NCBI GenBank assembly: GCA_964035545.1
Contig: OZ037768.1
Location: forward strand, 3,628,741 to 3,692,740
From: Bugula neritina
Lineage: Eukaryota; Animalia; Bryozoa
DNA length: 64,000 nucleotides
Direction: 5' to 3'
The stretch's first letter is position 1. The number at the start of each line of letters is the position of its first letter. Shown one piece after another: positions 18,960 to 63,998 of the stretch. The translations under genes and the position numbers were made by a program. The notes beneath the pieces are model-generated. The model made no database searches. It was given only the letters and a program-made list of their open reading frames with translations, and was not told the DNA's origin.

Positions 18960-20200
18960 ACTTTTGTTGAAAATGACACTCATACTGATATGCATTATCA
19001 AAAGGATTATGATAATCATACAAAAACTTATATTTATAATGAGTGTCTTACACTTTCACTGTGACTATCACTATAAGTTTAAGGGTAGTTGCAGTACAAT
19101 GACCACCAGACCTATATCTGGAGCTAGTAATACCAAGAGTGGTAGCATGAGATTGAGATTACACTTAATACGGATACCAGATATGTCTAAAACAGCAAAA
19201 TACTATGACTATGAGCATGACCTAAAGCTTACACTAATTCTAACAGTAACTCATAATCAGTTATTCTAAGATTGATGTCAACACTAACAGTAACTGAAAT
19301 GTATGACTAGAAGTAAATCTAACTTAAACTTTAATTAACTAACAATTGAAGCAAAAAATAATGATGACTATTTATTATAGTATTACTATCAATATTATAT
19401 TTAGTCTTATATTTATTGTTCTATTATAATGAGTATGATAATAATAGCTATTCCTTATAGATACACTTCTAGTTGTTATTATCATTATGATTATGATTAC
19501 TATTGGTAATCATAATCATAACTGCCTAATACTTTTACTTTACTAATATTATTTATATTAATAATAATTAAACTACATTAAATTACATTAACATCGAGTG
19601 ATTAACATACATTTTGATTTTGAAAACTTTTTCATTGTGATTTTATATTCATATTGTTATTCATAGTCCTACTACTAGTATTACTATTAGTATTAGTAGT
19701 ACTACTACTAGACTAGTGAATAGTCACTGTCAGTGATAGTGATACTCATACTAATACTATAGTAATACTGATACTGATGATAAGACTCATAATATTAATA
19801 ATAATGATATTGAATTTGATATTAACATTCATGTTGATATTGTCCATGACGAGCACCAAGTCCAGCTCTAAGCTGAGCCTAAGAGTAAGAGTAAGTACTA
19901 AGTAGTATTACTATTACTATTAATATAACTACAAGTTAAAGCATTAAATTTAGTAATGTATAGTATTAGTAACAGTAATACTTATACTATTACTAATACT
20001 TATACTAATATAATTTAAATTAACGTTATTAATAATATTTATATTATCAATACCATTAGCATTATGATTATATTTATAATATTAATATTTAATAATAATT
20101 ATTATTATCATTATGATTATCATTGTCAATCATATTCATTGTGATTATACTTATACTTATAGTATTAGTTGTAGCCCTGGACAAATGAAGAAAATAGTAA
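18960..20200. repeat. Drifting period-6 low-complexity tract (DIP2 intron 1)
   Basis: e.g. cactgt cagtga tagtga tactca tactaa ... tattga atttga tattaa cattca tgttga tattgt ccatga. Confidence 0.8.
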
Positions 20201-20273
20201 AATATAATCAATAATTTTAAAATAGACTAAAATATGTTTTAAATGTTTTCGTCCTTGTTGAGCAGTTATTTAC

Positions 20274-20345
20274 CGTGATTGCCATTGGATCAATTTCAAG
20301 TGGAAGTAAACCCATAGGCCATAACCTCATTTTACATTTGACTTT
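20274..20345 (-). other. Putative non-coding first exon of DIP2, splicing to the acceptor at 18227-18228
   Basis: Donor ACG|GTAAAT at 20274/20273 next to a CpG-richer promoter-like island. The downstream exon has a pyrimidine tract and TAG acceptor. The 5' boundary is approximate. Confidence 0.55.
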
Positions 20346-20517
20346 GTAACGGGAAATGATTAGTTTATTAAACTGAAAGAAACGCACTTTTGACATTAGC
20401 GAGTCGACAACCTCAAGTTGTTCTTTATTACTGTTTCCGGAAAGAGTTGCGATCATTGTGATTGTGCCAGCTTGTGCTTGAGCTTATACTTTCATTTTGT
20501 TCTCAATCTCAAACTTG
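20345..20517. promoter_or_regulatory. Putative bidirectional promoter DIP2 / SLC41A
   Basis: Short, locally CpG-richer segment between two divergent genes. Contains an ETS-like TTCCGGAA at ~20435-20442 and a candidate plus-strand donor TTG|GTACTT at 20517/20518. Confidence 0.55.
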
Positions 20518-20599
20518 GTACTTCAAACTCATTAAAAAAATGTGGAATGTGTGCAATTGAAATACTGAACGGATAATAGAAACGGCAGCACGTTATAGT

Positions 20600-20860
20600 T
20601 TATCATTTAGATTTGTAATTGTGTAGTTCAAATGCTTTTACTTATACTTTTAGTTTTAGTTTTACTTTTAATTTTATTATTTATAATTATAAAATTGAAT
20701 TATTATATTTATAATTATATTAAATTTAATTTTTAAATTTAATATTTATTAATTTGAATTATTGCAATCGACAAATGTAATTCAAATTGTTGTTCATATT
20801 CATATTGATATTGCTCCTGTGTTACTTATAACTTATAAGTTATAACTATAACTCAGTAAA
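20600..20860. repeat. Drifting period-6 tract (SLC41A intron 1)
   Basis: tactta tacttt tagttt tagttt tacttt taattt ... acttat aactta taagtt ataact ataact. Confidence 0.75.
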
Positions 20861-21043
20861 AAACACAACACTTGTCCAGTTTGAGTCGTGAATTCGTTTG
20901 CTTCTAGATTGGTTAAATCATATTGTTCTTGAGCTATTGTTCATTGACAAATTATTTTTCTAAGTAACTACCTGTGCTATTTCATGGTATACTTGTTTCT
21001 AGATGCTGATTACATAGACGAAAGCACAGATTGATGAATTGGT

Positions 21044-24000
21044 ATGAGCATACGTAGGAGGCAGCATTCTATGGCACCTAACTTGGCAATGGACAGGTTT
21101 GCATTTGAAAAATTTAATGATATTACCAATTTTACTTGCAGTAATATTCAACGATGTTTGGCTAAACAATTGCCTACTTTTTATTGTAGAAATTCAACTA
21201 ATGGTGTAGAAGAGGAGGAAGATGAAACAGAAACTTCATTCTCTACTCCGCTGGTAGCCAATGAAACTCACGATAATGCTGTAGAGATCAAGCCTGAGTC
21301 ATCTTGTAGAATAGGCATTCAGGTACTACTAAATGCTATTTAAGTTAGAGATCTATGTAGTTTCAACTCTTTCTGATACATACTGCTTATATACTGCTTA
21401 GGTGTTTTTAACTATTGATAGAGTGGCAATAATAGGCATAGTATGATTTTTTTGTTATATAGAAATGTACTTGGTTTAAAAAGAAAATTTGGTTAAGTTG
21501 TTTCAAATACTGGATAAGATTTGTCTAGTTTCATAGGCATACTATAGATGTAGCTTAGAGTTAAAGATTTTGGCTAACTTTTAATATGATTTGGAAAAAG
21601 TAGTTACAAGTGCAGTTGAAAAAAATAGTAACTTTTACAGGTGTTTTATGCAAAAAACAAAATAATATTATTTGTAATGAGTGCATGTGCAATTTTCACT
21701 TGTTGGTAAAAGCCAATTGCCTATCCCTACCCTGAGAGGTTGATAAGGACAGGTTGTTTTTTTTTAAATAAGAACAAAAAAGGTTGTTGAAAAATTATTA
21801 TCAAGGTTTTCCTGTTTAAAGAGTATAAATTGTTATTTGAGATGAGGTTTCAGCAAAACTGCACGTAGCTAAGCTTAATTTTTGTTCACTTGAATTTTTT
21901 TAAGTGAGACAAAATTAGACCCTATTAAGAAGTCATGTTCACTAATGCTCTTTTGCTCAGCACATTTCTATGTTGTAGGTGTTTTTCCCATTTATTGTTG
22001 CTGGATTTGGTACAGTTGGAGCTGGAATGGTGCTAGACATAGTCCAGGTATTGACAGCAAGCTCAAATCTTGTTATAAGGAATATATTTATTCAATTAGT
22101 ATAGTTAATATTCTAAATTTCATCTATGGCTATTTGTAGAGCAACCATGTTATCATGTTTTAATAAATATCTAAAAATATCGACGCACTGTCATAAGCTG
22201 GCGCATACCATTATATTTTAGCATTGGCCCGTGTTTACTGAAGTCTCGGAGATTTTCATTTTAGTTCCTGCTCTTCTGGGACTCAAAGGAAACTTGGAAA
22301 TGACTCTAGCATCTAGGCTATCTACTCAGGTTTAATATGCTTGTAAAATAATGGATACTTTTTGCTGCATCTGGTATTATTGCTGCTGTTGTTAATATAT
22401 ACAGTAAGATAAATATTGTTATGCTCCATTTTGTAATTTTAAACTAGTTTACTTAATAAGATAGGCCATAAAAATATTTGATGGAAAAAGGGAAACATGT
22501 TTGTGAGTTTGAAAAAAAAAATTCTTCTGTATTATTATATATTATCAAAAAAAATCATTCCCAATTCAATTTTCTAACGGCGAAGACTGCCTTGGCTCAG
22601 TACATCTAGTTTAACTACCTGTTAGTAATTCTAATAACTGCATATTATTCATCTCTTTGACAAGTTATTAGAGAAGGCTGTGGGGTTAGTAGCCGATACA
22701 GTAGCAGAGTTGCTAAATTGTTTTGACAATATTGATTATTTGTGTTAGATAATGGCTGTTTAAATACTCATTAGCTCACACCTAATGAGCCCCCTAGATG
22801 TATTGTCTACCTCCGGTATTGACAAGGAATCAGATTGATGGGTGTGAATGTGGGAGTGCTGAACTCTACTATCTAGATTGTTTGTGTCTAGTAGAGAATA
22901 TCCTGTAACATGTGTGTATCTAGTAGAGAATATCCTGTAACATGGTGTGTATGTTGTAGGCTAATCTAGGCATATTGAAGACCAGGAAGCAAATGATGAG
23001 GATGATCAGTGGGAACCTGGTTCTGGTGCAGGCTCAGGCTCTAGTTGTCGGCTTTCTTGCCGCCATATTCGCTATGGTGATGGGCTGGATACCGCAGGGA
23101 AAGTGGAATGTGCAGCATGGCTTGCTGTTGTGTGCCAGCAGTATGCTCACAGCCTCTCTCGCCAGTCTAGTCCTAGGTAGGCTCTTGCACACAAAACACA
23201 AGTATTTGTAGTCCTAGGTATGCTGTAGCACACATAACACAAGTATTAATCACATCTGTAATTATACTACTTTTTTAACTGTGAGTTAATTTGATATAAG
23301 GAAAAGTTATAAAATATTCTCTATTTTATGATAAATAACTATTAATTTTGCAGTTGCCGGTTTAATCTGTTCATTTTTTATGAGAATGAGCTATGTCTAA
23401 GTGTGTACTTCACACCATATGTGACCACTTCAGTGTACTGACTCTATTTCACATAGCTTCATATCCTTATAAATTAACAATCTGTATTATCTATCTACTT
23501 CTATCTATCTATCTACATCAGTATCTTTGCACTTTGTATAAGTACATGTAATATGCTATCATCACTTAGCTTCCTCGTATAATATCATAGGTTGGTACTA
23601 TACTAGTACTGTATACTACTTGTACTATACTAGTGCTGTATACTACTTGTACTATACTAGTACTGTATACTGTATACTACTTATACTATACTAGTACTGT
23701 ATACTGTATACTACTTGTACTATACTAGTACTGTATACTGTATACTACTTGTACTATACTAGTACTGTATACTGTATACTACTTGTACTATACTAGTACT
23801 GTATACTGTATACTACTTGTACTATACTAGTACTGTATACTGTATACTACTTGTACTATACTAGTACTGTATACTACTTGTACTATACTAGTACTGTATA
23901 CTACTTGTACTATACTAGTACTGTATACTGTATACTACTTGTACTATACTAGTACTGTATACTGTATACTACTTGTACTATACTAGTACTGTATACTGTA

Positions 24001-27876: not shown

Positions 27877-28849
27877 GTCAAACTCTAGAAAGGTGTATTT
27901 TACAATAAATCATGTGCGTAGACATTTGCGTTTATTTTATTGCTTACTGCCTTGACTTATCTTTAATAAAGACTTAATTATATCTTACGGTCTTTGTTGA
28001 GTCTTTATAATATAAGCATAGATTGTGCTGACTTTAAACAACTCATTATTAAATGTAAATCTATTTTTTACAGTAGTGAATGTTATTTTTGCCTTTTGTT
28101 ATTGTTTGTCGGAACATGATTTTTATATCTGTTATATAACCAAAAAATAAACTAATAAGCTCAATGATTGGACTATCTTTCTGTTTATTTTTATTCAAGA
28201 AGTTGCATAAAGGGTGCAATGTATCATGCCATATATGCTCTAAGGTCTGTCATCTGGTCTTTTAATAGTATACAATGCATTTATTTATTGGTTACTTTCA
28301 ATTTTATTGATTATACACATGTTCAAACTGTCACAGAAAAAATATTAGTAAATTTTGATTAACTCGAAATTTTTTGCTTAGCCCCAAGTCCAAATAATCA
28401 TTGAAAAGCTATAATTTTTGTTATAAATTAATGTAAACAAGCTAAGTATTCTACCAAAAAATTAAGGTGCTGCTTGATTTGCAATGCTTGCCTTTATTAA
28501 AAAATAAATTAGATTTTATGCATTTAATTATAAAAACTACTGCTAAAAGTTTCAACTCTTTATAATAATTTATTATATTTATCTAAATGGTAACATGAAC
28601 TCTTTGGGATTGTCAGCACCATTAATTTACTCAGTTTTTGATTAGAGAAGTTGTTATCTCATGAAGTTTTGATCATATCTAAATGTGCTCTTCTAACTTC
28701 CTCTTTAAAACTCTTCGACTAGCGTTACAAATAGAGCTTCTGTTTCGAAAGTTGGAGTAGTAACAAGTATACAAGCTTAAATTATTGTGTTACAATTGAA
28801 ACGTGAGATATTATTTTCACTTTGTGGCATAAATATTAACCGCAGCTAA

Positions 28850-29880
28850 ACATTTATGTTATAACTGTAACAGTAGTAATATAGTTATACTTATATACCT
28901 GTAAGTGTAGGCTCAAGCTGTACTTCAACTTGTAGCTGTATTGAACTGCCACTCACCTGTTACTGTTAGAACGCGTACACACGGACACTCACCGACTAAG
29001 TCTCACCCTAAAATCTCAACACAAAGTCTACTGCTAATGTTTGATGTTGGTTAGTAAATATTTATATATTTGTAATGCTAATAGTAATACTTATACTATA
29101 GCAATTGCCAATTGTATTTAATTTTATAAGTATTATTTTATAATTATTATAAAATATAAATAATAATAATTATTGATATTCATATTCATATTGAATTTGA
29201 TAGTAATAATAGTATTAGTATTACTATTGGTCATAGGCACAGGGCCAGGCATACAAATACAACTACTACGTCTACTAGCACAAAGAAATTATCATTGTCA
29301 TTATGATTATCATTATGATTATGCTTAGAATTAACATTAACATGGTGATGGTCATATAATTATATTGAAAATTTGTATAAAATTAAAAATAAAATACTTA
29401 TACTTAGTAGTAGTTTTATTAATATATTTCTTTTATATTTATATCAATATGAACAAAAATTTATAGTGAGACTCAGGCTGATTCCAAACTCGTAGCGGTA
29501 TTAAAAGTGATAGTCATCCTCATACTCATAGCCCTCTCAATATAAATATTATAGTAATATTACTTAGTAATGATTATATATTGATGTTGAATTTGATTTC
29601 TATCACCATTTCATGGAGACATGGACCATAGTAATAGTCATACTGACACTGTAGATCACTCAATGTAAGGACCACTATTGTCTTAAGATCTTTAGAATAA
29701 TGCAGTTTGAGTTACTACTAAATTACTATAATTAGTATTTTTTATACCTATACATAATTATTTTTATTGTTATTTATGATATTACTAATTTGTACAATGA
29801 AATATAAAAATGTTAATAATAAATTCTATGCTGTGCTAAGATAGGTTATGGCATTGCTATTCATTCAAACTATAATTTAT
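28850..29880. repeat. Drifting period-6 tract (upstream region of SYK)
   Basis: tgtaag tgtagg ctcaag ctgtac ttcaac ttgtag ctgtat ...; tattga tattca tattca tattga atttga tagtaa. A weaker continuation appears at ~30800-31100. Confidence 0.78.
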
Positions 29881-29968
29881 AATAAAAATGATAATAGTTA
29901 GACCATTTTTTTTCTTGTACATAATCCTTCAGCCAGGGTCTAGCTAGCATTTATTTAATTTCTCTTCC

Positions 29969-30660
29969 CTTAGGTACCTAAGTGATTTTTCAATGTTCTT
30001 GCTCACTAGAGTACAGCAGAAAATTTCGCTGTTTACTTTTGCTTATTCATCATATTCAACTGCTCCTCAAGTTTTGCTATGGCTCTCAATGCTCTCAACA
30101 CGTCAGTGTGCCTGAATCAATGTTGTCCATATTTTTTCTCTGATTGCTTTTGATGCTGTCTATTTTTCTCATTTCTCTTTTTTAATGTCTGTTACCAAGT
30201 TATGGTAAATTTCCTTATTTTCATATTGATCTTTGGCTTGCTGTATGATCATAATAGTTCCTGGCATGGTCTAATCTTTATTTCTTACACAGGCTTAGTA
30301 CAAAAATTGTGTTATTATATCAAGCCAACCATCTAGTATGTGAAGCAACGTTTCCTCTCTCTCATTACATTTTTGCATTTTCCCTCTTTTTCTACATATA
30401 CTCTGCTGATCATGCTGACATTAGAATGAGTTCTACTATTGTTTCTTCATATGCCCATTCTTCATTCATTTGGATGTTTTCTTTATCTACTCTTTATCTG
30501 CTGGGTTGTCCATGAAATTCCTTTTTCTTTTATTCTCGTTATTTTACACCCTGCATTGACTTTCAGCAAACTTGATTACTTGTACTCTTTTTGTCTTTTA
30601 TCATCTTTCATCAGCAGCATTACTTAACTCTTTCGTGCTTCATTATTTTTTGCAAGTTTC
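29969..30660 (-). mobile_element. Decayed 3' end of an RLE-type (R4/Dong/NeSL-like) non-LTR retrotransposon
   Basis: Minus-strand translation with stops and frameshifts gives FHGQ..VDKE.., a CCHC-knuckle remnant KC/KCNEREETLLHILDGW, LCKK..NYYDH, VLRALRAIAKLEEQL and ARTLKNHLGT*. This is the motif order typical of the C-terminus of these elements. Confidence 0.6.
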
Positions 30661-32110
30661 TATAGTCTATGCTGTTTATAATACTTAAATAAACTCGGAA
30701 TCAAATTATTTTAACTCTATTCAGTATGACTTAGTGTCATAGCTTATTAATTATCCTTGTTCTTTGGCCAGCATCTTGTAGGAGGAAGTCTAATCGGCAC
30801 TAATACACTAATACACTAATACACTCACATTGGACCTTGAAAGTAGAATTTAGTATAATAGCGCTTATTATAATTATTCAAAATATGAGTATCGATATTT
30901 TCAGTGTGAGTTTCAGTGAACAATAGTTTTTATAGCAAGTTATTAGTTTTGAAATATTATCAGTTAGTGGTAGGATACATATCTAGTTCTATTTATATAA
31001 ATATTGATTTATGTTATATGAGTTATTGTTATACTAATCTTGAAATGAATCATTACTGTCTGGTTAATTCAGTCATGACTCACTCTAATTGAACAAAAGG
31101 CTTGGAAGTATGTAACATAATACCAACTAATTGAACTCAAATAGTTATATTGTGGCGGCCATTTCTTCAATATTCAATCAGTATTAAAGGATAATTCAAT
31201 ATTTTTTATATTTTAATTTTTTAGTTTGATCATTCTTTGTTGCAAGTCTATAGAGTTAGTGTCATTAATTTCTTTAATATTGGTTTATAAAGTCAAATTT
31301 ATATACTAAGCCTATTTCAAGTCAGGTTTTTTGTCAAATAGTTGTAGCAAGAAAATTGGTCCACAGTTTTTTAAATATCAAATTTAAGCCAATAATTTTA
31401 ACTTTCAGTTAAGCCAAAATAATATCATTGAAAGTAGTTTTCTATTTCTGTCGACCCTAGTACAGATAGGCAATCATCTTATTGGCATTAAAAGAGCAAC
31501 TGTTATAGTGGTTAAGCAATTGTGGATGAACTTTTGCAATGTGAATATTGATGAAGCAATAGTTGCAAGAACTAAGTTTTAATTGTTAAATAATGTTTTT
31601 AATTGCTAAATTTGTCTTGCGTGTACACCCTGTGGCATAAGAGAGGTTTACCCTGTGACTGGGAGAAATGTCATGTCAAGTCAAACTAGGAAAAACTTGT
31701 TTTAGAAATCAGTTGTGTTTTAGAGTGTGCCTGATCTGTCAGCTGTATTCTTCATATGTACGGTTGTTTTGAGTTCCAAAAGTATTTTCTTCCTTTTAGA
31801 AACTAGTTGCGTTATTAGGATGATGAAGTATTGGATTAGGGTATATGCCCTAAAGACTTGTTGTAAATAAAAGCTATATTGTTTTACACTTCAAGATTAA
31901 TGTGACAAGGTGACCTTAAAATTGTCAAATTTAGGTCACGGTTACTGTCTAGAAATAAGCCCAAGTATCTAGTTCAGTTTAAATGTACACATACAAAATT
32001 ATTGGTTAAACTGTAATAACATGAGACATTAAGTTTTAGCTCAACTTCTACAACTCTACTACCATAAGCTAAATATAAAATCAGTCTATGCTTTCTATAT
32101 CTCAGGATCT

Positions 32111-32286
32111 TTCTACCTGTAAGGTGCTCTCTACCTGTAAGGTGCTCTCTACCTGTAAGGTGCTCTCTACCTGTAAAATGCTCTCTACCTGTAAAGTGCT
32201 CTCTACCTGTAAAATGCTCTCTACCTGTAAGGTGCTCTCAACCTATAAGTTGCTTTCTGCCTGTAAGTTGCTTTCTGCTTGTAAGG
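32111..32286. repeat. Minisatellite, 18-bp unit x~9
   Basis: tctacctgtaaggtgctc; explains the (VLSTCK)n ORF. Confidence 0.9.
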
Positions 32287-32739
32287 TTTTTTGCCTCCAG
32301 GGTACTTTGTGTCGTTATGGTGTTTTCCACATCCAGGGTACTTAAGTGGCTTCCCTAGTTTAAACATGTTTTGATTGAAAAGACGCAATAAAATAATGTA
32401 CATTCCTATAATAGGTTCATACAGTTTAAGGAATAGTAATTCGTGTTAGTTGCTGATACAAGGGTGATTTAAATTATAAATTGATAATTAACCAACATGT
32501 TGAATTAGAGAGCATCAGCTGCTCTTTCCATAATCAAATTTTACTGCATAATAAAATATTGCTTTCATATTTTTTCGATAACAATTTTGGTCTATTGAAA
32601 TAGAAACTTAGCTTTGTCTTTGATTGTTGAATGCCAATTACCAAAAAGCTTTGCATTTCATAAATAGCTTAAATATGCTATAATAATGTGCTATAGTAAT
32701 TAAGAAAAATAGTTTAACATGGATGTTTTATTGTTGTAG

Positions 32740-33973: not shown

Positions 33974-41613
<7,640 letters not shown>

Positions 41614-45300: not shown

Positions 45301-47004
45301 AAAGTTATTATTAAAGTCACTTATATAGACTGCATTGACTGTCAATATGTAAACTCTAACACTGTACTAAACACACCATAACATTCCCTAGTAACTAATA
45401 TTGGTATCCTTGAATATCATTTAATCACCTAATCAACTGAAGTTTTGAGAATACAACAAATAAATTCTAAAACACATTAGTGCAACTGCAGAGTTGATGG
45501 AAATCCTAAAGTAACTTTTACAAAGTTACTTTAGGATAATCTTACTTTACATGAGCATTTATCATTCACACAAAACACATAAATTTGACAATGAAATTTA
45601 ATGTCCTTAATGAGATGTTGCTGTTTCAAAAACATACCGACTGTTTCTCATCTCTCTGGTCAGACCACTTGTCGACTACGTGACTCTTGAACTGCTCAGA
45701 CTCCAGCTGAATGAGAATAAGATTGACAGAATAGTTACAATAACTGCACAGAAATAAATCACGAAACAGGAAAAAAACTAGGAGCACATAAGTAGACTCT
45801 AACCATAACTGAGAATGGATAACAATGCAACTACTTTGAAATGAAAACTAGACACAAGAATTCATTAGGAGACATAAAATACAATATGCCACCTTGCGTA
45901 TGTCGGGACAGTTCTGTCTGAAATGCTCATACAGACGTTCTTCAGCAACCTGCTTTCTTTCCTCTTCTCTAGCAGATCTGAGAGATTCACTCCGTTCCTT
46001 CATTTGATTCAATCTGTCCATATTATCCAGACTAAACCCTTTTAGCTCCGCCTAAAGGAAAGATACTGTATTGAGAGTAACGATCTCTAAGTTGTCAGGA
46101 TATGCTTTAACTCAACAAGCAACATTGGAGATCAATGACCAGCACCTCCCCCCCCCCCCCCCCCCCCATAGCAGGCGTTGCAGTCGCATTAACTCATCCA
46201 TACCTCATACTGGTTTCTTTCACTTTGATAGAGAGCTGCAAGTTTACTTCGTCTTCTTGCCATATTCAGAGATTTGGTGTCTTTTTCATAATTCTTCTTG
46301 TAAGCATCCATGCTATAATAACAAATTGTATGCATGTATGTTTTTTACAAACATGGATACTAAAGTACATAGTTGTACACAGAAAAATTGCCAACAATTT
46401 GTAAATGTGAGTTTTACAATATTTTTATATAAATATATATAATTCTACAGTTTGATTCACAATGTTTTGCAAAACCTCAATAAAAGCCAGTGATGTTTTA
46501 CCTATTTCAAATTCATTCTTAAGGTAATATTATATGACTTGTCATTAATAGCCTTTTCATATAGGATTCAGACTGAGAGAAAAGCAGCAAAACCTAGTTT
46601 GAAAGAACTCAGTGCATAAAATTAAAACAATGATAGGATAGCCTTTAACGACTTTTGTGCTCAACTTGAATTTGTTTTAAATTTACAGCTTTGATAAGTT
46701 AAAATTATTAAAAATGGATATGAAAAAGAAGACCAAAAAAATTGCTTTTTAGAGTTTTTTAAACAAAGTCCCACTTGGTTGAAATTTCTTATAAAAACAT
46801 TAACTCGGTGTACCTGCTTTGAAAAGTGGCTTTTGAGGTCCAATTGGCATCTTTTGAAGAGTGTATTTCTGCATTACTGAAGTATCTGGCAGTATCTTGC
46901 CAACTGTCTCTAAGATCATTTTCTTGAGTCCTTCTTCGGACAATTGCTGCCTCATAAATATTCTTTCTTGTTGTATAAATACTTGGCATATTAGGTAAAG
47001 CCAT
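42331..47004 (-). CDS. TCHP: Trichoplein keratin filament-binding protein (TPH coiled-coil), complete
   Basis: Starts MALPNMPSIY and ends RGKSAWQ*, both trichoplein-like termini. Phase-consistent exons: 47004-46814, 46312-46204, 46051-45893, 45706-45638, 45297-45124, 44912-44800, 44135-43958, 43704-43643, 43340-43259, 43157-42972, 42795-42652, 42366-42331. E/K/R/Q-rich coiled coil. Confidence 0.9.
42794..42946. repeat. 33-34-bp tandem repeat x~4.5 that includes the TCHP 3' splice site
   Basis: acctgtcaacacatgccactctcaatatact(a/g) starting at 42794, 42827, 42860, 42894, 42928. Confidence 0.9.
44155..44478. repeat. 11-bp minisatellite in a TCHP intron
   Basis: acttact(a/g)ca(g/t/c) x~28. Confidence 0.9.
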
Positions 47005-47369
47005 GTTTCAATACTAAAAATAATTTATAAAGATAAAAAACTGATCAAAAAAGATACTTGTTTAAAATATAATAAATAACCATACTGTTGAAATCATGCT
47101 GTCCGTTAAATAGAAAAAAACATGCGTGCTTAAAGCAACCTTCAGTCTGAAATATGAGTCCTAATAATAAGCAATACTTTTCACTTTTACCGTTTTTAAA
47201 ATGTTGCATCAGCTATACTTGATTGCAATATGAGTGCACTCTACTGTTTTTAAAAAATCATATATTTCCATCCAACTTTCAGCTGGCATAAAATTTCAAC
47301 TTTTAATTAGGTTTTAGTAGCTATTTCAGCATTTGCAGCATAATTTTTTTAATCTGCTAATAATTGAAC

Positions 47370-47780
47370 TAATAATCATAATACTTAAAACTATGACAGT
47401 GACTTTGGCTATGCCTGTACCTATGAACATTGGCTAAACTAAAGCTATACTACCAGTATCACTGTGATTGTGGGTATCAGTATGAGTATAAGTATAAGTA
47501 TAAACAAAAGTAAAACTATAGCTAATGTGAAACCGAATCAGTAAAACTAAATGTAACAGTAATGGCAATGCTTATGCTATGAGCTATAGCTATACTCATA
47601 GTAGTACAGTATGACTATGAGTATTGACACTTTGACTTAAAGACACAGTTGCACTTGCATAATGAATAATCATTATCATAATGATAATGGATTAATTTTA
47701 TAATTATTAAAAAATATAATATTACCATTATTAATAATATTAATTATTATAACTATGATTAGTGATTATCATTGTGATAT
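47370..47780. repeat. Drifting period-6 tract (TCHP 5' region)
   Basis: cagtat gagtat aagtat aagtat aaacaa aagtaa aactat agctaa ...; a second block lies at ~48130-48350. Confidence 0.78.
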
Positions 47781-48379
47781 TTTACCTAGGGGGTTAGACT
47801 TTAGAGTTTGCTTAGTAAACACGAAGTCATGTACTTTAATATTAATAGTTTCCTTTCCAGAACAATCAGAGACCTTAGAATCTCTAAAGTCACACCTTCA
47901 TAACACTCCTCCGTGAAGGTCTCCTCTTCCCTTTTGAGAGTCTAGAGACTCAACACAGATAGTGATACAGATTGGACTGGGTTCGAAACTCGATAAAATT
48001 AAAAGCCATTAGTGATTTTACTTTTAGGAAGAGCATTCAATCATAATTGCTCCAGTGCCCCATCTAAATAAGTCCTTAGCCCGATTTAACCAAAAAAAAA
48101 TCATCAGGGGTTTCTCACAGGGATGGTGACACTCACACTGACTATAAGTACAATATTAACAATATTATTATTATTAATATTATTAAATTTAATATTAATA
48201 ATAAACTTGCGTGAGTTTTTTTTATATTTTATGTTTCTCAGTTTAAGCTATAACACTTAGCAAATAGTAAAACATTCATAAAAGTACTATGAGCATAATT
48301 ATTTGCTATTAACTAAAGTTAACTATTACTATTTGGTTTGGTATTATATTTTTCTGTTTGAATTTCCAAATTGCTTCTC

Positions 48380-48760
48380 CTCCAGTTTGAAAATTTCGAA
48401 GTTTACAGCGGTTATCTGCAGCATTGATTAGCAACTTATAAACATAGTCGCTCAACGAATCGCTGTTTCTGTAAACCATTTAGTAAACTGTCGGAAAATA
48501 TTGATCTAAACGAGTACATTTCTCGAAAGAAGAGCGTGCCATCAAAACATTTTCTGAAAACAGAATAATATGCGTAGAACATTATTTTGACATCGGACAA
48601 TTTTCGTTTTTAAAGCGATTGAGAATACGAATGTTTTTGCTTCATTGGCAATTTTTCATCTGCTCTCCATTAAAGTTTTAACATTGCTATAAAGTACAAT
48701 TTAGATTATAATGAATTTATAGCGCCCTTTATTAAAAGTGAACATATTTTAGTCGCAAAA
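48380..48760. promoter_or_regulatory. Putative bidirectional promoter TCHP / GRAMD2-like
   Basis: Locally CpG-richer, non-periodic island between divergent genes, bracketed by period-6 tracts. RFX-like half site TAGCAAC at ~48429-48435. Confidence 0.45.
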
Positions 48761-48769
48761 GCAATATAG

Positions 48770-49190
48770 ATTATGTTATTATGCAAATTGCAATATATGG
48801 ATATACTTCAGTATTCAGACCATAGTCAAAAATGAGACCGTGAGTGAGTATTGCTGCTTGCACTTTGACTTTCACTTTACTGTTTACATTTGGTGTAACA
48901 TTAACACTTCCAGTTACACAGTTAGTGCTACTGTTACTGTTAGTGTGACTTAGTATTGCACTAACTCTATGATTAACACTCACAGTAACAGTAGTGAGTA
49001 GTGGTACTGAGTAACTAGATTCCGGTTAGCCATTACATAATGATTATATACATAATATACTAATAGTAATACTAATACTATTAATGACAATATATACTTA
49101 AAGTTAAACTGTTTAAGTTTATAAATAGATACAATAATAGGTATAACCATAATGAAAATGTAAATTAATTATTAAATAAAACTCATGTCT
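48770..49190. repeat. Drifting period-6 tract (GRAMD2-like 5' region)
   Basis: ttgcac tttgac tttcac ... tgtaac attaac acttcc agttac ... attaac actcac agtaac agtagt. Confidence 0.78.
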
Positions 49191-49257
49191 CTGTTTTAAA
49201 GTATTCACTCTGTGAATAAAAATGTTTCGAGAACTTATGCTTCGGCAGTACAGGAAC

Positions 49258-49335: not shown

Positions 49336-49408
49336 TGCTAAATTGGTAAATTTTATAAAAAGTCATGTTTATAAAATTTACCACCAAGCTACTGCAGTTA
49401 TGTATTTA

Positions 49409-49685
49409 AGTGTCTGGTAAAATGGCACAGGTGAAAATGGCATGGTGAAAATGGCACAGGTAATGGCATAGGTAATAATGGCACAAATGGCAAAGTAGGT
49501 AAAAATGGCACATTTTCAATATTAGGGTTTGGAGTGATGGTTGGGAGTTTAGAATGGGGGGTTTAGGATTCGGGATGGGGGTTTGGGAAAATTTAACATC
49601 AGTGCATGTGCCGATTTTACCTACTTTTCCATTTGTGCCATTATTACCTGTGCCTTTATTACCTGTGCCATTTTTACCTAAAATC
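49409..49685. mobile_element. Mutator-type MITE / foldback element with 9-bp TSD
   Basis: Long inverted arms made of ~15-bp GGTAA(A/T)AATGGCACA units (49416-49512 vs 49607-49680). Identical ATGTATTTA flanks at 49400-49408 and 49686-49694. The extreme termini match imperfectly. Confidence 0.8.
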
Positions 49686-51172
49686 ATGTATTTAGAAATA
49701 GTTACGGTGCTTTAAGGCAGACTTTATTTTAACCCAACATATTATTTACTACCCTTATGTTTTTTACCACAAACTTTCAGTAGAGTGTATATGTTGCTTG
49801 AACTAATAATATATTTTTAATGATTATTACTATTCAGTACTGTAATTAGGTAACATGGTTGTAATTTAGTAAATTAAGCCTATAATGTAGAGTCTTGGAG
49901 CCTCTAACTGTATTTTTGTCATAATTAAATAATTTAAACTGATACACTTGTTGCATAGTGGCCAATATCCAAATTACCAACCAAAATCTCACATGTCATG
50001 GAATAAAAGTTGTGTTACTGTGAATATTTTCAATTTTTCAACCTTTCAACATTTACTTATTCATTTAATGCTTAGTATGGCCATCAGACAATTTAGAATT
50101 ACTAGATTTTTTTGTATTGCGTTAAAGGGTATAAGAGTACCAGCTGGTGCATTGCTGAGTAGTTCTTGTAACCATAGGCCTACTATGTTATAGAGTTGTA
50201 TGTTATGCTATAGTGTTTTATGTCGTATACCATTATATTGTGCCGCATATGTTCACTGACAAGACATGTAAAATCAAGCTGTTACTTTCATTTACAGTAG
50301 TTCTTATGATGATCTCACCGAGTGTTTCCTTAGTCCTACCATCAGATTTTACTTACGCTAACTTATTAGAACAGTGTTTATTATTCATTCAAAATATTTG
50401 GTTAAACCATCCCTTCAGTAGCTGTTATCAAATAAGTGTATGGTGTAGTAATCATGCTTAATATATGTTTATTCAGCAAATTATTTGATTTAATTTGAAA
50501 CATATTTGCTTATTTACATTGTAATCTGCCTTACCTATAACTATTTTAAACAATACCTTCTTTTTAATAATTGGAAGGTTTTGTTAAATTATGTTCAAGT
50601 AAATACTTGAACATAATTTAACAAGTGGTTTTGTTTATAATTTCCAAGATTCACACCTTTATATAATGACAACTTAGTAGCATACCAAATGCTCACAATA
50701 AAATTGCATTTTTAAATATATTAGAGTTGAATAAATAAAAAAGTAAAAGCTTGTAATTCTGGTAAAGATGCTGTTGATAATCTTTCGAAAATATTTCAAC
50801 ATACCTATACTTTTCATGCTCGGAACTTTTATATAGAATAATGAGTAGGTTAATTTATAGCATATTACAAATTCTTGCCTCTGTGTGAACTCAATGATGC
50901 TGTGGTGGATGCTTCCCTATGCCTGCTGGTAGCCATGATTATCACGAGCCTGACATTTACGTTTACCCACTATTTTTATGCGACATGTTTGGCAAAACAA
51001 CTTGTAAGGGAAGCCAACATACCGCTTGTACTAAGCTCCTGTTGAGTTGATATTTTCGTAGTAATGCTCGTTGACTATATAACAGAGTAAGTGCTTTCAG
51101 TTTCAGTCAGCCTAGAGCTACCAGTTCACATGCTTCTCTGTGAGATTTGTATCCTTATTTAAGAAAGAAAAG

Positions 51173-57100: not shown

Positions 57101-60100
57101 CAGAGAAAATGATGTGTGTATTTACTATAGGATTTTATATGCTGAACAATATTATATTGAAAACTGGTGATCTGCTGTAAATCCAACTATTTAAACTTTA
57201 AGCTATAAAATTGCATATGTTTGTTTGAAACCAAATTACCTTTTTACACATTTTCAAATAACCGGAAGCTGTCATCAACGTAACAAATGGTAAATTGTAT
57301 GAAGGCTCTAAATTCCCAAACACCTAGTAGTTTGAGGGTAAAATTTGGTTAATAAAACAAACATTTCAACTCATCTGAGTTGATGTTTTTACTGCAAGCA
57401 ATACTGAGATTACAATGTCCATAAATACCTGTGAAAATGAAATAAAGACGTGAGATAAGAAGAAGCAGCTACAAATATTATAGTGCGTGTGTACTCAATA
57501 CCCTGTCATTCATACCATTGCTGCAGGTAGCCATTGATGTCAGCCGAATACAAAACATCACCCAAGAAAAGACAGCCAAAATCATTCCAAATGCAATTAA
57601 AATATCTACAGATTCCGACACTGTAAGCTTGCTTTGATAACTTTTAATTCCAGTATTTTATTTTCCACGCTAAATTTAAAGTTAAAGTGTGGCTATCATT
57701 AGCAGGGTTACCGCAGGTCATTAATGGTTAGCTGTAATAATTCAAAGATAATAACGTAATATATTGCATTAAATGAGAAAAATGGAATCAATAAAGCTTG
57801 GCAAAGTTGATTAGATTTCTTGTATCGGAGATCAATGTTTGGTAAGGAGCATGGAGCTAGTAGTTACTTGCAACGCTAATGAGATATTCTATGCATATAC
57901 ATTTCTTTATTTAATATAAGTTTCTGCATGTCAACATGTATGCTGTCAAATGATTTTCCTGCACAAACTGCAGCTACTTTGAATGCTTAATATACATCTT
58001 TATATTCCAATATTATTGGTTATCATAATTAAGTAGAAAAATAAAAAAAAACATTTCGAAACCCAGAAAGTTATGGTATTCCTTTTTTGTAGTATGTATT
58101 CAGCTCATTTATTTCAAGAGATAAAGCTTATAAGACGCTAGTTGGAGTATGGAGAAAGTCTGAGGAGGTATAAGTTACATGTTATATAATAAGTGTTACA
58201 TCAGTCTATTATTTTCTAGCTTTAGTCAACTAGAGTGTTACTTTAGTTTTATATAGTTACTTAATGTTTCAGATGAAAAATATACTCATTAACTTATATA
58301 TGATAAGCATTTGTTTTGTAGTTAATTTATTAATTTTTAAAATACATTTTCCATGTCTTGGTATTAGTTTTTAAATTGATTTTATTGTGACACTGATGCA
58401 CGGTTTTGGTACAATATACTATAAACATATACATAATGTATAGCACAGTGAAGCATATGAGATATGCATTGCATGGCACATGCTAGAGGGTTCAACAATC
58501 AGTAAATTATATGTAGTATTATGCAACTTAACAAGTTATGTTGGACCATCTTCTCTTCAGTTTATGCAAGCTGCAGTACAATAGTGTTATAATAGTAGTA
58601 TAATGTTAGAATAGTAGTATCATATTGGAATAGTGGCTTTAAATAATAAGCATCTTTCTAATACTTTAGGTTGCAACACTGTCTTGTGAAGAGTCGGACT
58701 TGAGTGATGTTGACTCAATGACTCAGATTGTAAGTTTTCTATAATTCTTCTCAAGTTTAGGCACGTCTTGCCTGGTTATTGTAGTTCTTGAATTGGATAC
58801 TTTGAGTAAATGTAATCAATTCTATGCTTTTAGAGTTTAGACTATTGATTGCAGAAAATATTATTATGTTGAATATTATAACAAAAGATGTTATGCCCGT
58901 TCACACTACGGCCAAAAATAACCCTTAGTAGAACAATAGCTTTTAGTAGCACAAGTAACACGATTCAGCCAATCAACACGCAGACAACAACCAATGAAAT
59001 TGCTAACCACCAAATTCAAGTTTTTGTCGTCAACATGTTGTATACTAAAAACAGAATATGTCAGTTTAAAGTTAGATAACTTCTATATAACACATGAACA
59101 CACCACATGAACACACCGGCACTCAGTAGCCACTTTATAGTGTGAACAGGGCATTCTATTGGCAACACAGATCTTATTGATCTGTTAGAGCAATGACTTC
59201 TAAGTCTCAAATTCTGTTAAAAATTTACTGCTTCATCATTAAAACATAGAGGTCATTGTAATTTGTACATATACAGCAGGTAAAATTTTATTCTTTGCAT
59301 GCAGGTAGCTATGCCTGGATATTCAGATGCTAGTTGTCCAGCTAGACCAAGATCAGAATCTGATTCCATGTCTGAAGTAAGTGACTCGGGGTTTAACGGG
59401 GAACATGACGAGCGCCAACAGGTGGAGATAACTGCTGATGTTATTGAATTTACAGCTCCCTCTTCATCTACCAATGACATCTCTACCGCCAATGCTTCTA
59501 CTAGCAAAGACACCTCTGCAGAGGTTGAAGTACCTTTAGCTGAAAAACATTTAACTAAAAGTTTACAGTGCAATAGTGAACCTATACTGTGGAAGGGAGG
59601 TGAGAGAAGTCATAATAATAATAATTTTAGGTTTGGTGTCTATATACGGTGAAGAGTTTGATCTATATAGTGTGTTTCTTTTTAATATCTGTTGAATAAG
59701 GGTGCACAACTCCTAGAAATGAAACAAAACTTCCAAGATATGAGTTGTAAAAAGAATTTATGTTGACACTTGATACTCTATGTTTTAGGTATTACTTGCT
59801 ATGTGCATGAATACTTGGAAATAAACCAATATATAAGTCTAAGGTTTGTAATGGAGTTATATATATTCAATTTGTAGTTGAAAGGTTCACCAATTTTCCT
59901 AAAAGTATATTAAAATGGTGCAGTTTTCAAGTATCAGATGGTTCAGAGTCATTGTTAGTCATGCTGATGGTGTGGTAAGTTTTTTAAACATGTATGACTT
60001 CATAGGTCTTCACGTGATCGCATAAGATATTAGTACAGGACTTGTTATGGCTTTCAATTCTTTATAAATTAGGAATTAAATGAAAACCAAATAAAAAAAA

Positions 60101-60738
60101 ACTTTTAATTTCGGTAGTGCAACACAAAAATCTAATAAGATGCTCAAGATTTTACCCAATCACATATCCACAAAATGCCTTTTTGTCCAATAGGAATGCT
60201 CAAAGAGTATACCAACACCAAAATGGAAGATAGAGCCGTAGAGGGAATGTTTACTATCAGACATTTGGGTTCCGATAATATTTTTATACAGGATGTTGCA
60301 TCTTCATGTGACTCTTTAAAAGTTGAAAATATGCATTTTGAACCAAAAGTTGAAAGTTTTATTTATTTTGTTTTAACGTCTCATTAAAAAACTGTTAGGA
60401 CAAACTAAAATTATGCTATAAAATATTTATTATATTTAGTGCACATATTGTATAATATAACACTATTAATTGTCAAATATTCATCTTTCAGCACTGGTTT
60501 GATAGCAGCTATGAGCATATATCTGGGTATTAGACTCTGCTTATTTGAGAATGAGCAGTTAACATATTCAATAAAAAGACAACTCCAAATACATGAGACA
60601 AATCTGCACCTGCAAGTTGAGGCCACCATAGAACAAAATCATAGACTTATATCACAGCTATCAAATATGCTCTCAATGCTAGAGAAAGTGGTGGCAAAGG
60701 CTGGCTGCTTGTGTTCCCAACAAAACTCTTTGCAATAG
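51173..60738 (+). CDS. GRAM domain protein of the GRAMD2 type (GRAM + single C-terminal TM + coiled coil, no VASt/ASTER domain)
   Basis: Exons: 51173-51240, 51961-52050, 52334-52417, 53487-53628, 56334-56424, 56817-56920 (YSCALYQDSIASGHLYLTFNWFCFYSNFIG), 57527-57622 (EKTAKIIPNAIKIST), 58093-58167 (YVFSSFISRDKAYKTL), 58670-58729, 59305-59599, 59878-59974, 60492-60738. TM segment LLVMLMVCTGLIAAMSIYLGI spans the last junction. The GRAM exons are secure; the N-terminal exons are supported only by phase consistency. Confidence 0.82.
54025..54110. repeat. Minisatellite, 22-bp unit x~3.5
   Basis: ta(g/a)ctgtgggta(t/c)tctctacaa. Confidence 0.85.
58893..59154. mobile_element. MITE with ~16-bp terminal inverted repeats (PIF/Harbinger-like)
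   Basis: ATGCCCGTTCACACTA ... TAGTGTGAACAGGGCAT (one indel). The superfamily is inferred from TIR style; the TSD is not clean. Confidence 0.6.
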
Positions 60739-62328
60739 TTACCTTCTCACCTAGAGTCTCGCACAAATAGCTGTGTATTATTTTTAGTTACTGAATTATT
60801 AAATATACCAATGATCTCTTTTAGTTTATTGTCTTTTAATTTCTACAGCATACTTCAGTTTTGTGCAGTTTTATGTGAAATCACTTTTATTAACTTTTAA
60901 GTAGTAAAAATTTTGAGAATTTCTATACCTGTAATTTCTTTATGAGGTGAATTTCTACACATTACACTGCTGCAGTAAATCACAGACAATCATGCTAATA
61001 TGCTGACCTAAAAATGCAATATGTGATTTTTTGCAATTTATTTTTGAACTATTTATGCGCCAACTAAGTGCAAAATGTATATGGTATTATTTTGTGACAG
61101 TTATCATGCAATAGATTGTTTGAATTTTGTATATATGATGCAATTATTTTATTATTGTTGTTATGAAGCCATGCGTAAGTTATAGAATATGTTTTTGCTG
61201 GTGCTCGTTATTAAATGTATTTTTATAGGCTCTAATAAATAATAACATAAAGAATTACATACTTTTCTCAAAATTGTAAAAACAATAATTATATTTAGTA
61301 TTAGATGTATGGATTTCCAAGTTGAACACTCCAAACATTTTTTTTCATCTACATGACTATTGAATTAAACTCACTGTGATTGTTGCAAATAAAATGTATG
61401 TTGTATCACCACAGGCCTAAATCAAGCTTACATCGAGGCATGCAGAGAGTTATAAATGCTGTTTATTGACAAAATTATGTAAATAAATTATTACAGTTGG
61501 TATAATGTTATGTGTTCTGATTTTCAACTTTTTATGAAGCATGTATTACTGGTACTATGTTATACTATTACTGGAGTACAGGTATATTTTATTAGTTTAT
61601 CACAATTGCTGATCTATAATGAGATATTATTATGGTGAGGGTGCTCTTGCTTTGAATGCAGCTCAAAAATTGTTTGGGGTATTGCATTGTCAGCTGCTTT
61701 AGTATTCAATCATGTTATAACTCTCTGGTGATACCTACTGCAATAGAAATAGATAGGTGGTATAATAAAATTTAGCTATTTAAGTTGATGAGATTCAAAG
61801 TTGTGCTTCTTAGCCCTGCTTCAAATGTTTAAAAAGAATGTTTTCAGTCTATACAAAAAAATTATAAGTACTCACAGTTTATAATTATGCTCAACATCCA
61901 AAATTTCTAAAATTGTATACATTATTATTTGCAAAGTTATTATACAGCAGTAACTTCAACTTGGTTTTCAACAGTTACATGCTCTATGTTACATGCTGAT
62001 GCTCATATGCCCCTGTGATTATGTAAGGGTTAAAACAAAGATTATTTTTGAGAATCATTATTGCTATTAGTTTAAGGTTAGCATGACTGTTATAAAATAG
62101 TTATATTGAAATTCCGTGACCGCGCTGGTTGTATTTTTTAAAGGACGTAACTATATGTACAGGCTACAGGACAGTTTCTTACTTCGTAGTTGAACTTTTG
62201 CGAAAGAAGATAACTCTATAATATTTACCAGCTACGAGTCGGCAATTTTTTGCGCATCACTATCATGTGCCACATTTCCGCAACGCGTTTTGCGAGACCT
62301 GACGGTGTTAGTGATGATGTGGAAGATG

Positions 62329-62336
62329 TGACGTCA
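62329..62336. promoter_or_regulatory. Perfect CRE palindrome TGACGTCA in the CREB3-like promoter
   Basis: Exact match ~130 nt upstream of the ATG in a CpG-rich segment. A UPRE-like GACGTGG lies at 62392-62398. Confidence 0.6.
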
Positions 62337-62462
62337 TTGTTTCTAAAAATAAATTCGTGATCGCTAGTCATAACGACAGGGGAAACACGACGACGTGGAT
62401 CTGTTGAGTTGGTCTTCTCTTTACTTTACTTGTATCTTCCTAATTTCTGCAACCTCGTTGCT

Positions 62463-63998
62463 ATGAGTGACGTGGATTTACTAGACATGCTGTTTGATGA
62501 CAGCAACAGTTTAATGGAATTGAACGAACGGTCATCAGTGTCTCAAACTGTTACTGAGCCTCAAACAAGTTTTCTTCAACTTCAAGCAAACCCAAAGTGC
62601 AATAATTATAATAATATTCATCAAAGTTCTCTGGGACAAGTATCACACCCTTGTAATACTTACTTTGAGGCTCATTCTGATTCTCAGCTAAGCTCTAACA
62701 CCAAACTTCAACGCAAAGACGGGATGGGCACTTTTACTTTACCTCTAGATCTGGATCTTTTCTCTGGAAATGAATGTGCAGCTCAAACTCATTCCCAAGC
62801 TGCGACTTCAAATTTAGACGTTGACTGGTCATCCACTTTTCTAAACTCGTCTCTCAATCTGGTAAGACTGCCACAAAATGCTATCACTGTGTCAGTAATA
62901 CTCTCTAAGTCTATCACTATCACTATGTCTAGTCTACACTCTATAACTAATCTATAAGTATAAGTGCTATTTACTTTGAGTAACTACTGAATGGTTTGAG
63001 TTTATGATAGTCATTAGCTCGATAATTGAAGGCGTAACTTAGAGTGATTTCCAAATCATTAACATAGAGTTAAGCTGATGGTTGAAGTCTTTATAATTAT
63101 TCATTTATACTATAACTATAGTAGAATCATTATCAAAATTAAAAATTCATTGGCTCTTCTTGTGGTTATCTACAAATACATACAGATCACATATGCCTAT
63201 TGCTCTAATCTAACATACATACATACCTACAGTATACTGGCTGTCGGGTGTCAGTCAGCATATTAAATTTTGTCTATGTCAGATTCGCAGTAATTTACAC
63301 TGGCAAGACACATTTTCACTGCAATACTGGCATGTTCTAAAGCTCATTGATAAAATTTCCTTTGTTAGCTTTTCCTATGCCGGCATGCCACGTATTCAGT
63401 GGCCTCATCATTGGCTTTTGCGTCTTTACCCTCCACTCTTCCTGGCTTCTTCCTGCTACACATCATCACCTGTCATTTGTAATCTAATGTTATCATTTTT
63501 TCATCCCCTATCAAATCATTTACAATCCTTTTCATGAATGTTAAGTTATTGTTTTTAATTCTGAAATAAGACCATGTTTGTACTGAGATAATGTATAGAG
63601 TTATTTATATTTATGTTTGAATTTGTACCTGTAGGACGGCTTAGACCAGAATGAGTTTTTCAATGCACTCATGGAAACAAATGTACCTGATGAGGTGAAA
63701 GAACAGAAACAGCAACAGCCCTCCTCAAAGCAGTGTCACGATCATGCCTACTCCATAACGCCAGCCTCTCCCAACAGTGATAGTGGCGTGTCCAGTGGGC
63801 CATACTCCCCCTCTAATTCCACAAACAGTTTGGAAGATGTGCCGTTTGATCTTGAGCGGGAATTGTTTGCTCCTCTTGACCTCAAAAGTTACGAGAATGC
63901 TGACATCCTCCCAGATGTAGACCCAATGCTACTAGACTCACTATCAGACTGTGGGTCCAGCCCAGGCCTTGCAGGAAATGAATCACCCATAAATTTTG
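62463..63998 (+). CDS. CREB3/CREB-H-like bZIP transcription factor, N-terminal part (bZIP lies beyond the window)
   Basis: Exon 62463-62861 begins MSDVDLLDMLFD (acidic LxxLF-type activation segment as in CREB3/CREB3L3). Exon 63635-63998 has DHAY (HCF-1-binding D/E-H-x-Y motif) and SPNSDSGVSS (DSGxS degron as in CREB-H). The bZIP is not visible, so the family is inferred from these motifs. Confidence 0.7.
62880..63300. repeat. Drifting period-6 tract (CREB3-like intron 1)
   Basis: ctaagt ctatca ctatca ctatgt ... tataag tataag tgctat; starts ~20 nt after the exon-1 donor. Confidence 0.75.

Follow-up and report, generated by a model that had tools for sequence, protein, structure and literature searches.

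Six-base tracts with a free central base at gene starts of the bryozoan Bugula neritina

Why should DNA at the starts of animal genes fall into a six-nucleotide register in which neighbouring hexamers resemble each other while no unit is kept? The question is raised by a stretch of 64,000 nucleotides of the Bugula neritina genome (contig OZ037768.1, positions 3,628,741 to 3,692,740 of the forward strand; assembly tzBugNeri2.1, PMC11480708), referred to here as the window, in which a preliminary description had noted such drifting tracts beside the 5' end of every gene. The window is C4:3628741-3692740 of a 216.0-Mb, 321-contig assembly, to which the genome-wide counts refer; one of its proteasome exons matches B. 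neritina PSMA6 at 98%. The analysis revealed that the tracts are a real, genome-wide and position-specific repeat class with a rule that is not given by standard repeat theory, and this suggests that a mutational process not yet described acts where genes begin.

The six-nucleotide register is real: in all seven stretches proposed to be periodic, identity at lag 6 exceeded both that at lag 3 and that of dinucleotide shuffles (z 3.3-17.3). The lag-6 identities, each against the shuffled value, were 0.54 versus 0.31 at 18960-20200 (z 17.3), 0.56 versus 0.38 at 20600-20860 (z 7.3), 0.49 versus 0.31 at 28850-29880 (z 14.0), 0.54 versus 0.30 at 47370-47780 (z 11.1), 0.47 versus 0.34 at 48130-48350 (z 4.3), 0.45 versus 0.30 at 48770-49190 (z 7.1) and, in a weak tract, 0.37 versus 0.29 at 62880-63300 (z 3.3). 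The absence of a fixed unit and the decay with distance were also confirmed, since identity in the first tract falls from 54% at lag 6 to 46, 42, 38 and 33% at lags 12, 18, 24 and 36. Over 44-45 pooled tracts (22-23 kb), chance-corrected identity was 32, 19, 12, 8, 6 and 4% from lag 6 to lag 36 and negative at most lags that are not multiples of six, while background DNA was flat. Tandem Repeats Finder detects fragments of the tracts only. The ranges first proposed were too generous at some ends: the tracts are present, but 29650-29880, 48205-48350 and 63190-63300 are merely AT-rich. No comparable tract was found in the internal introns of the 64-kb window, in agreement with the preliminary description, and the single strong additional periodic segment is a period-3 TAC microsatellite (39227-39494).

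The tracts had been described as devoid of motif and of mutual homology. No fixed unit exists, but a degenerate core is shared: each unit consists of A[C/G]T or of T[C/G]A with a 3-nt linker, most commonly A[C/G]T with AAT or ATT, and the tracts cross-match hundreds of genomic sites at ~70% identity. The view that the element is encoded by periodicity rather than by motif was thus half right, as the period exists but is carried by a pseudo-palindromic triplet whose central base is free. This freedom is specific. At lag 6, C pairs with C and with G almost equally (observed/expected, o/e, 2.2 and 2.0), while A-T and C-T pairs are depleted (0.62 and 0.64). The C/G centre flips in 57% of cases in A.T and in 50% in T.A context versus 11% in A.A/T.T, and A/T centres likewise flip in 21-25% of self-complementary triplets versus 10-13% elsewhere. 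Whole blocks are not inverted: the flanks at ±2 keep the direct orientation, and whether a C/G centre flips does not depend on whether the linker does. Flips of the centre climb from 40% to 67% as the flanks approach perfect direct copies, and sense-oriented tracts are nearly strand-symmetric. AA/TT is below expectation (o/e 0.8), ApT, the dinucleotide of the suggested 6mA signal, is not enriched (o/e 1.00), and perfect odd palindromes are in modest excess.

The behaviour of the central base is most evident in the most regular cores. Genome-wide, 8796 perfect five-unit windows were counted against 399 in a reversed control; ~22 clusters, spread over 1.9 Mb, account for the first 100 matches, from which the perfect cores can be extrapolated to number roughly two thousand. 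One linker is kept throughout in 6556 of the 8796 windows (74.5%; random expectation 12.5%), whereas a single C/G letter is kept in only 132 (1.5%), which is four-fold below the random 6.25%. Strictly alternating (CGCGC-type) windows make up 9.0% (789) and CCGCC-type ones 7.5%, and CCGGC with its reverse complement is about twice as frequent as random. In chains with a single linker 305 flips were found against 137 identical neighbours, and three identical units occurred in 9 of 273 cases. Neighbouring C/G centres thus flip at a frequency of 64-69% (57-69% across counts). Simulated plain slippage with point mutation stays below 50% flips. Ordinary slippage cannot explain the tracts, because one C/G position is less pure than chance.

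These counts also bear on a lattice of transposon footprints, in which an element that duplicates 3 bp of its target and leaves a 3-nt pseudo-palindromic footprint would, by inserting and excising over and over, add 6 bp with a random centre each time. The footprint of Sleeping Beauty is an analogy. Such a process would account for the 3+3 geometry, the direct linkers, the strand symmetry and the fixed triplet; its simulation, however, gives exactly 50% flips and 6.25% pure windows instead of the 64-69% and 1.5% observed, orthologous centres flip in place, and no element with matching ends was seen at the tracts. The model was dropped as extremely unlikely.

Where the tracts lie relative to their genes was examined in the window and at 20 independent loci (15 proteasome subunit and 5 Ras-family loci). 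The six genes of the window are DIP2 (minus strand), SLC41 (plus), a SYK-like kinase gene (plus), a trichoplein-like gene (minus), a GRAM-domain gene (plus) and a last gene (plus), which we take to be CREB3-like and which is without a Pfam match, the gene models having been searched exon by exon. All six have a tract near the 5' end, as first described, although that of the last gene is weak. The features concerned are as follows:
18062-18130, minus strand: first coding exon of DIP2 (from its translation and a probable RNA contig joining 18062 to the next DIP2 exon)
18874-20182: main hexamer tract, in the putative intron 1 of DIP2 (minus strand), starting ~90 bp past the donor (z 17)
20274-20456, minus strand: putative 5' untranslated first exon of DIP2 (donor motif at ~20273, read from the sequence)
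20605-20819: hexamer tract downstream of the putative SLC41 start (z 7.3)
21071-21320, plus strand: first coding exons of SLC41/MgtE (splice joints 21094>21188 and 21320>21977 in probable RNA contigs)
28829-29651: hexamer tract just past the putative 5' untranslated region (UTR) donor 28802 of the SYK/ZAP70-like gene (z 14.0 for 28850-29880)
46813-47004, minus strand: first coding exon of the trichoplein-like gene (an acceptor site precedes it; weak TPH domain match on a later exon)
47368-47778: hexamer tract in the putative 5' UTR intron of the trichoplein-like gene (z 11), also present in the other B. neritina lineage
48117-48204: short hexamer tract, AT-rich, on the side of the promoter that faces the trichoplein-like gene
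48400-48700: putative bidirectional core promoter, non-periodic (CpG o/e 0.76-0.86; the AT skew switches sign here)
48821-49165: hexamer tract past the putative start of the GRAM-domain gene, which is supported by a GRAM match
62463-62861, plus strand: putative long first coding exon of the last gene (open frame and donor)
62881-63187: weak hexamer tract just past the donor at 62862 (z 4.0)

The probable RNA contigs confirm the SLC41 joints and one DIP2 junction only, and exon 1 of DIP2, of the SYK-like, of the trichoplein-like and of the GRAM-domain gene is predicted from sequence. Further support for the gene assignments comes from a DMAP_binding match on the DIP2 exon after the first coding one, an MgtE match on a later SLC41 exon, and SH2 and tyrosine kinase matches downstream of the tract at the SYK/ZAP70-like gene, to which donor 28802 probably belongs. 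CpG o/e is ~1.0 at 20001-20500, around the putative first exon of DIP2. CpG is depleted window-wide (o/e ~0.3-0.4) but reaches ~0.75-1.3 at the putative promoters, which suggests a methylated genome with unmethylated starts.

The tracts had been called promoter-flanking; this proved wrong, as they lie downstream of the putative starts, mostly in intron 1, in a zone of ~0 to 1.3 kb past the first donor. Two-way promoters only seem bracketed, since each of the two divergent genes has a tract of its own. The tandem promoter of the SYK/ZAP70-like locus is without an upstream tract, and nothing periodic was seen upstream of the tandem promoters of PSMB2, PSMB3, PSMB5 and PSMA7. Averaged over ten donors, the lag-6 excess in 200-bp bins from +100 to +1300 was 20, 18, 16, 10, 7 and 7 points, and ~0 beyond. 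A tract was found 5' of the first matched exon at 14 of the 15 proteasome subunit loci (the exception being a weak match with stops), while the five Ras-family loci comprised two with clear tracts, one with a doubtful minisatellite and two without a tract within 7 kb. In the 3 kb downstream, which served as control, a tract was seen at none of the 20 loci. Where exon 1 is readable from the protein (PSMA3, PSMB2, PSMB3 and PSMB5), the intron-1 tract starts at most ~100 bp past the first donor; at PSMA7 and PSMA6 it begins ~200-500 bp past it. Finally, a weak lag-6 signal at 62535-62825 (lag 6 0.41 versus lag 3 0.23, z 5.5) lies inside the long putative coding exon of the last gene, and therefore fits a process that depends on distance from the start better than an intron function.

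Several features of other kinds were recorded near these genes. The 93-nt intron of SLC41 (21095-21187), spliced in probable RNA, lies inside the open frame 21044-21343, so that its retention would add 31 residues in frame. An A-rich, degenerate coding-like stretch with many stops (29900-30760, minus strand) is possibly an old retroelement fragment in the putative intron 1 of the SYK-like gene, and a MITE-like element with long imperfect terminal inverted repeats of 14-15 bp subrepeats occupies 49406-49687. Among the Ras and proteasome genes, those on small contigs (C15, C33, C66, C85, C101, C110 and many more) are intron-poor, with in-frame TAA/TAG only, as in the ciliate code, and are probably cobiont DNA. 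On contig L024 a Rho-like GTPase exon is preceded on the same strand by another exon, presumably of CARD/death-fold type (2599-3258 and 4644-5081, minus strand), a possible CARD-GTPase fusion.

How the tracts change with time was assessed against a second B. neritina lineage, ~8-9% diverged, substitutions and indels being counted in the aligned PSMA6, EMRE and trichoplein loci. The main tract of the window differs by 8-10% in other B. neritina samples, like the flanking intron, whereas exons differ by 2-6%. Tract sites other than centres change at the intronic rate (6.6% versus 8.0% outside, p 0.36). At orthologous tract centres, C<->G exchanges were found at 7 of 83 sites between the lineages versus 10 of 527 elsewhere (p 0.003), and at 3 of 58 versus 5 of 952 between two haplotypes (p 0.007). 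Indels of six or a multiple of six made up 10 of 19 in tracts versus 9 of 84 outside (p 1.5e-4), gains and losses coming in 6-, 12- and 18-bp steps, and the most regular cores do not align between the two lineages. A ~180-bp stretch in the PSMA6 region, specific to one lineage, is pieced together from fold-back palindromes, among them one with 9-bp arms and a one-base loop. In the same gene, one haplotype of the other B. neritina assembly carries in intron 1 a long terminal repeat (LTR) retrotransposon with reverse transcriptase, RNase H and integrase (L029 4565-9297), which is absent from L014 and L034.

Outside the species, no tract was seen at the orthologous PSMA6 promoter of Watersipora subatra, nor at the trichoplein gene of two relatives with 86-88% exon identity, in 0.8 kb upstream or 3-6 kb downstream, where the first donor may lie outside the contigs. 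A probably bryozoan relative with 73% exon identity has a 325-bp trichoplein tract, 230-550 bp upstream of the ATG (contig L037 1575-1890; the same in L038-L040), with the same triplets and free centres, periods of 4 and 6, and a GC-richer composition. Shared origin and convergence cannot be separated for this tract because the trichoplein exon tree is without resolution. The claim of a lineage-restricted feature tied to gene 5' ends is borne out by its placement in intron 1, by the 14 of 15 proteasome loci with a tract and the 20 downstream controls without one, and by its absence at Watersipora PSMA6.

Two of the options initially offered for the tracts, a protein-binding lattice and a chromatin signal, gained no positive support from these comparisons: non-centre sites evolve at the intronic rate, the cores are unalignable, and C<->G change at centres equals or exceeds the background transition rate. 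For this last reason selection alone is excluded as the cause, and the divergence data speak against a code that is conserved. A protein able to recognise pseudo-palindromic triplets in either orientation (bZIP-like half sites, or a polymerising protein), with purifying selection as the only force, would explain why the freedom of the centre is restricted to self-complementary triplets, and the 325-bp tract of the 73%-identity relative contains four AP-1-like heptamers. In Bugula, however, such heptamers are rare (5 in 22 kb of tracts), the cores turn over completely between lineages, and selection can neither lift C<->G change over the neutral rate (8% versus 1-2%) nor drive purity below random. 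We regard this explanation as highly unlikely. The third option, the footprint of a slippage or repair process coupled to the start, is supported by the 6n indels, the homogenised linkers, the raised C<->G change at centres and the placement after the start.

The account that we favour, tentatively and at a little short of an even chance, is that a DNA process linked to transcription has left the tracts behind as a scar that built up over time: slippage in 6-bp steps would be coupled to minute fold-back patches, templated by the strand itself, in which the central base is complemented. In the transcribed, probably underwound first 1-1.3 kb of a gene, nicks, breaks or stalled forks would arise, and a 3' end would fold back on a self-complementary triplet, with its TA or AT arms as primer, so that a few bases of its own strand would be copied and the central base complemented. 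The strand would then re-anneal one unit back in the 6-bp register, and a unit would be added or rewritten with the opposite letter. The snap-back step would resemble that of end joining mediated by microhomology and dependent on synthesis (SD-MMEJ) or of quasi-palindrome template switching, repeated many times and mixed with plain slippage. Snap-back SD-MMEJ uses primers of 1-4 nt, including TA and AT (PMC5728401), and quasi-palindrome events were observed in yeast solely under high transcription (PMC3820800). C/G centres might flip more than A/T centres because a C:G pair would steady the fold-back and C:C mismatches, for which the affinity of MutS is low (PMC3167615), would escape MutS-type repair. 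Young cores would be near-perfect lattices, older parts decaying by point mutation into the observed drift. As neither long inverted copies nor a hairpin-optimised order was seen, such a patch would have to be tiny. No period shorter than six accommodates both a C/G-centred and an A/T-centred triplet. Six is also one step beyond the 2-5 bp deletions of TOP1, which could, speculatively, remove periods of 2-5 so that six is the shortest to survive.

A separate search for mismatch-repair genes, exon-wise and therefore insensitive, gave on the chromosomes only four MutS_V loci and a single MutS_I locus (C5:17.60-17.61 Mb, C1:5.91 Mb, C9:7.57 Mb, C3:29.90 Mb); this hints weakly that B. neritina may lack MSH3, the repair protein for loops of several bases.

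The modelling also bears on the templated scar. A model in which each unit added is the complemented copy of the one beside it settles, without any free parameter, at 2/3 flips, close to the 64-69% observed, and in a coarse random search templated model families fitted with an error of 0.53-0.60 versus 1.41 for the untemplated one, i.e. ~2.5-fold better. The same data can be read without a template: C<->G hypermutation near the start at A[C/G]T and T[C/G]A, by base damage, abasic sites and REV1-type bypass, would supply the letters, while slippage would delete identical neighbours and multi-unit duplications would keep mixed ones. This rival stands because random centres with strong deletion of identical neighbours do exceed 50% flips (58-66% in simulation). 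It agrees with the raised orthologous C<->G change beside unchanged flanks, with the near absence of three identical units and with the lack of long inverted patches. Yet it needs a mutagen that is specific for self-complementary triplets and causes C<->G with no added C>T (which makes up 4-6% of outcomes), a palindromic context raises the flips of A/T centres as well, and its family fits worst. We consider it unlikely, if still a serious competitor.

A number of observations weigh against the templated scar itself. No model family fits all five pattern counts; single-unit flipping predicts 17% strict alternation versus 9% observed, and too few CCGG-type patterns. A literal long snap-back would invert the linker too, in conflict with its independence of the C/G flips and the direct flanks at ±2. 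The flips depend weakly on outer fold-back pairing, permutation of the C/G letters leaves the mean folding energy unchanged (p 0.31), rare words in tracts show no clear local inverted excess, and the PSMA6 palindrome patchwork folds only at z -1.8. The C<->G count at orthologous centres amounts to ten events in alignments that are prone to slippage, the rationale for a period of six is weakened by the additional use of four in the 73%-identity relative, and the patchy distribution among species is without explanation. Long-range hairpin perfection was accordingly not supported, given the folding permutation and the rare-word test; a 19-nt local inverted copy (48928-48946 / 48976-48994) is contained in the tract at 48821-49165.

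Folding raises the question of whether the tracts are kept for their structure. Mixed arrays fold at -11.8 kcal/mol and pure ones at 0 to -0.7, and real tract windows average -6.0 versus -3.5 if made pure. Mixed lattices could extrude hairpins or cruciforms and act behind RNA polymerase II as supercoil sinks or anti-silencing buffers, like the periodic A/T clusters (PATCs) of nematodes that provide the precedent (10.64898/2026.08.08.743475); the mutational process would deliver the lattices, and selection would preserve their position and mixing. The prevalence at proteasome genes and the use of the same position with a different unit in the distant relative agree with such a selected element. 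Against it stand the absence of sequence constraint in the tract comparisons, a roughly two-fold difference in length between lineages and a spread of ~0.1 to 1.3 kb among genes, the lack of a tract at Watersipora PSMA6 and in the trichoplein contigs of the two close relatives, and the fact that the real C/G order folds no better than a permuted one. We consider it rather improbable. Just as improbable, in our estimate, is that in some bryozoans an undescribed, enzyme-driven system adds and rewrites 6-bp units with a complemented centre where transcribed genes have their 5' end, the first intron being turned into a lattice capable of fold-back, which would serve the host as a topological or anti-silencing buffer and as a mark of its active genes.

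Comparison with known systems showed resemblances without a match. With microsatellites and cryptically simple DNA the tracts share a short period, 6n indels, homogenised linkers, decaying identity and a neutral substitution rate, but they are anti-homogenised at one position, need a self-complementary triplet and are confined to the first kilobase of the gene. Descriptively they are cryptically simple DNA, yet they fail the homogenisation expected of slippage. CNG trinucleotide repeats likewise consist of x-N-x' triplets, with a fold-back mismatch at every third base, and are unstable. These hairpin-forming repeats have been reviewed (PMC11505666); the Bugula units differ in that they are AT-framed (ANT/TNA), have a period of 6, are mixed instead of pure and occur at most of the housekeeping genes tested. 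SD-MMEJ by polymerase theta snap-back and quasi-palindrome switching would share with the tracts short inverted self-templated patches, 1-4 nt primers, transcription dependence in yeast and palindromic patchwork insertions (PMC5728401, PMC4912351, PMC3820800), but are known as rare, single events at breaks or reporters, in contrast to a periodic kilobase at thousands of genes, and long inverted copies are not in clear excess in Bugula tracts. The PATCs of Caenorhabditis elegans are also non-coding, intronic, lineage-specific, defined by periodicity and linked to transcription-coupled mutation (PMC4947018; 10.64898/2026.08.08.743475). Unlike them, the Bugula tracts have a period of 6 rather than 10, are limited to the 5' end, have no Helitron or other element consensus, and are depleted in AA/TT rather than clustered; the ~10-bp A/T-cluster periodicity of PATCs was not found, lags 10-11 being below expectation. 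The TOP1 signature ID4 shares transcription-linked indels at short repeats (PMC8866115), but its 2-5 bp deletions have a TNT motif and neither build repeats nor complement bases. In the literature searched on cryptic simplicity, hexanucleotide periodicity and bryozoan first introns, most subscription papers being outside the search, no published description was found.

Other classes were rejected on direct grounds. The tracts are neither transposons, as originally proposed, nor a satellite: genomic matches are short (~70% identity), occur in either orientation and stay within low-complexity cores, with no bounding inverted repeats, and a single family is contradicted by the absence of a common consensus, terminal repeats or target duplications. 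A coding reading was also rejected, as was an interstitial telomeric repeat (TTAGGG accounts for 2 of 45,638 hexamers). A structured non-coding RNA is contradicted by the lack of an Rfam match and by the near strand symmetry, which also rules out an RNA motif (Quaking or branch-point site). A pure weak/strong or minor-groove code is incompatible with the fact that A and T are not interchangeable at lag 6, and block inversion with linkers and flanks that stay direct.

Tandem repeats are expected to homogenise, and the occurrence of thousands of loci that are less pure than random at one base implies a process beyond standard slippage. The tracts flag gene starts from sequence alone, and they render models of template switching and mismatch escape testable by ordinary population sequencing. 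Even without a function, they would constitute a natural archive, spanning the genome, of mutagenesis coupled to transcription in the germline of an animal; if functional, they would be a second case, after the nematode PATCs, of gene-protecting information that resides in the mechanics of DNA.

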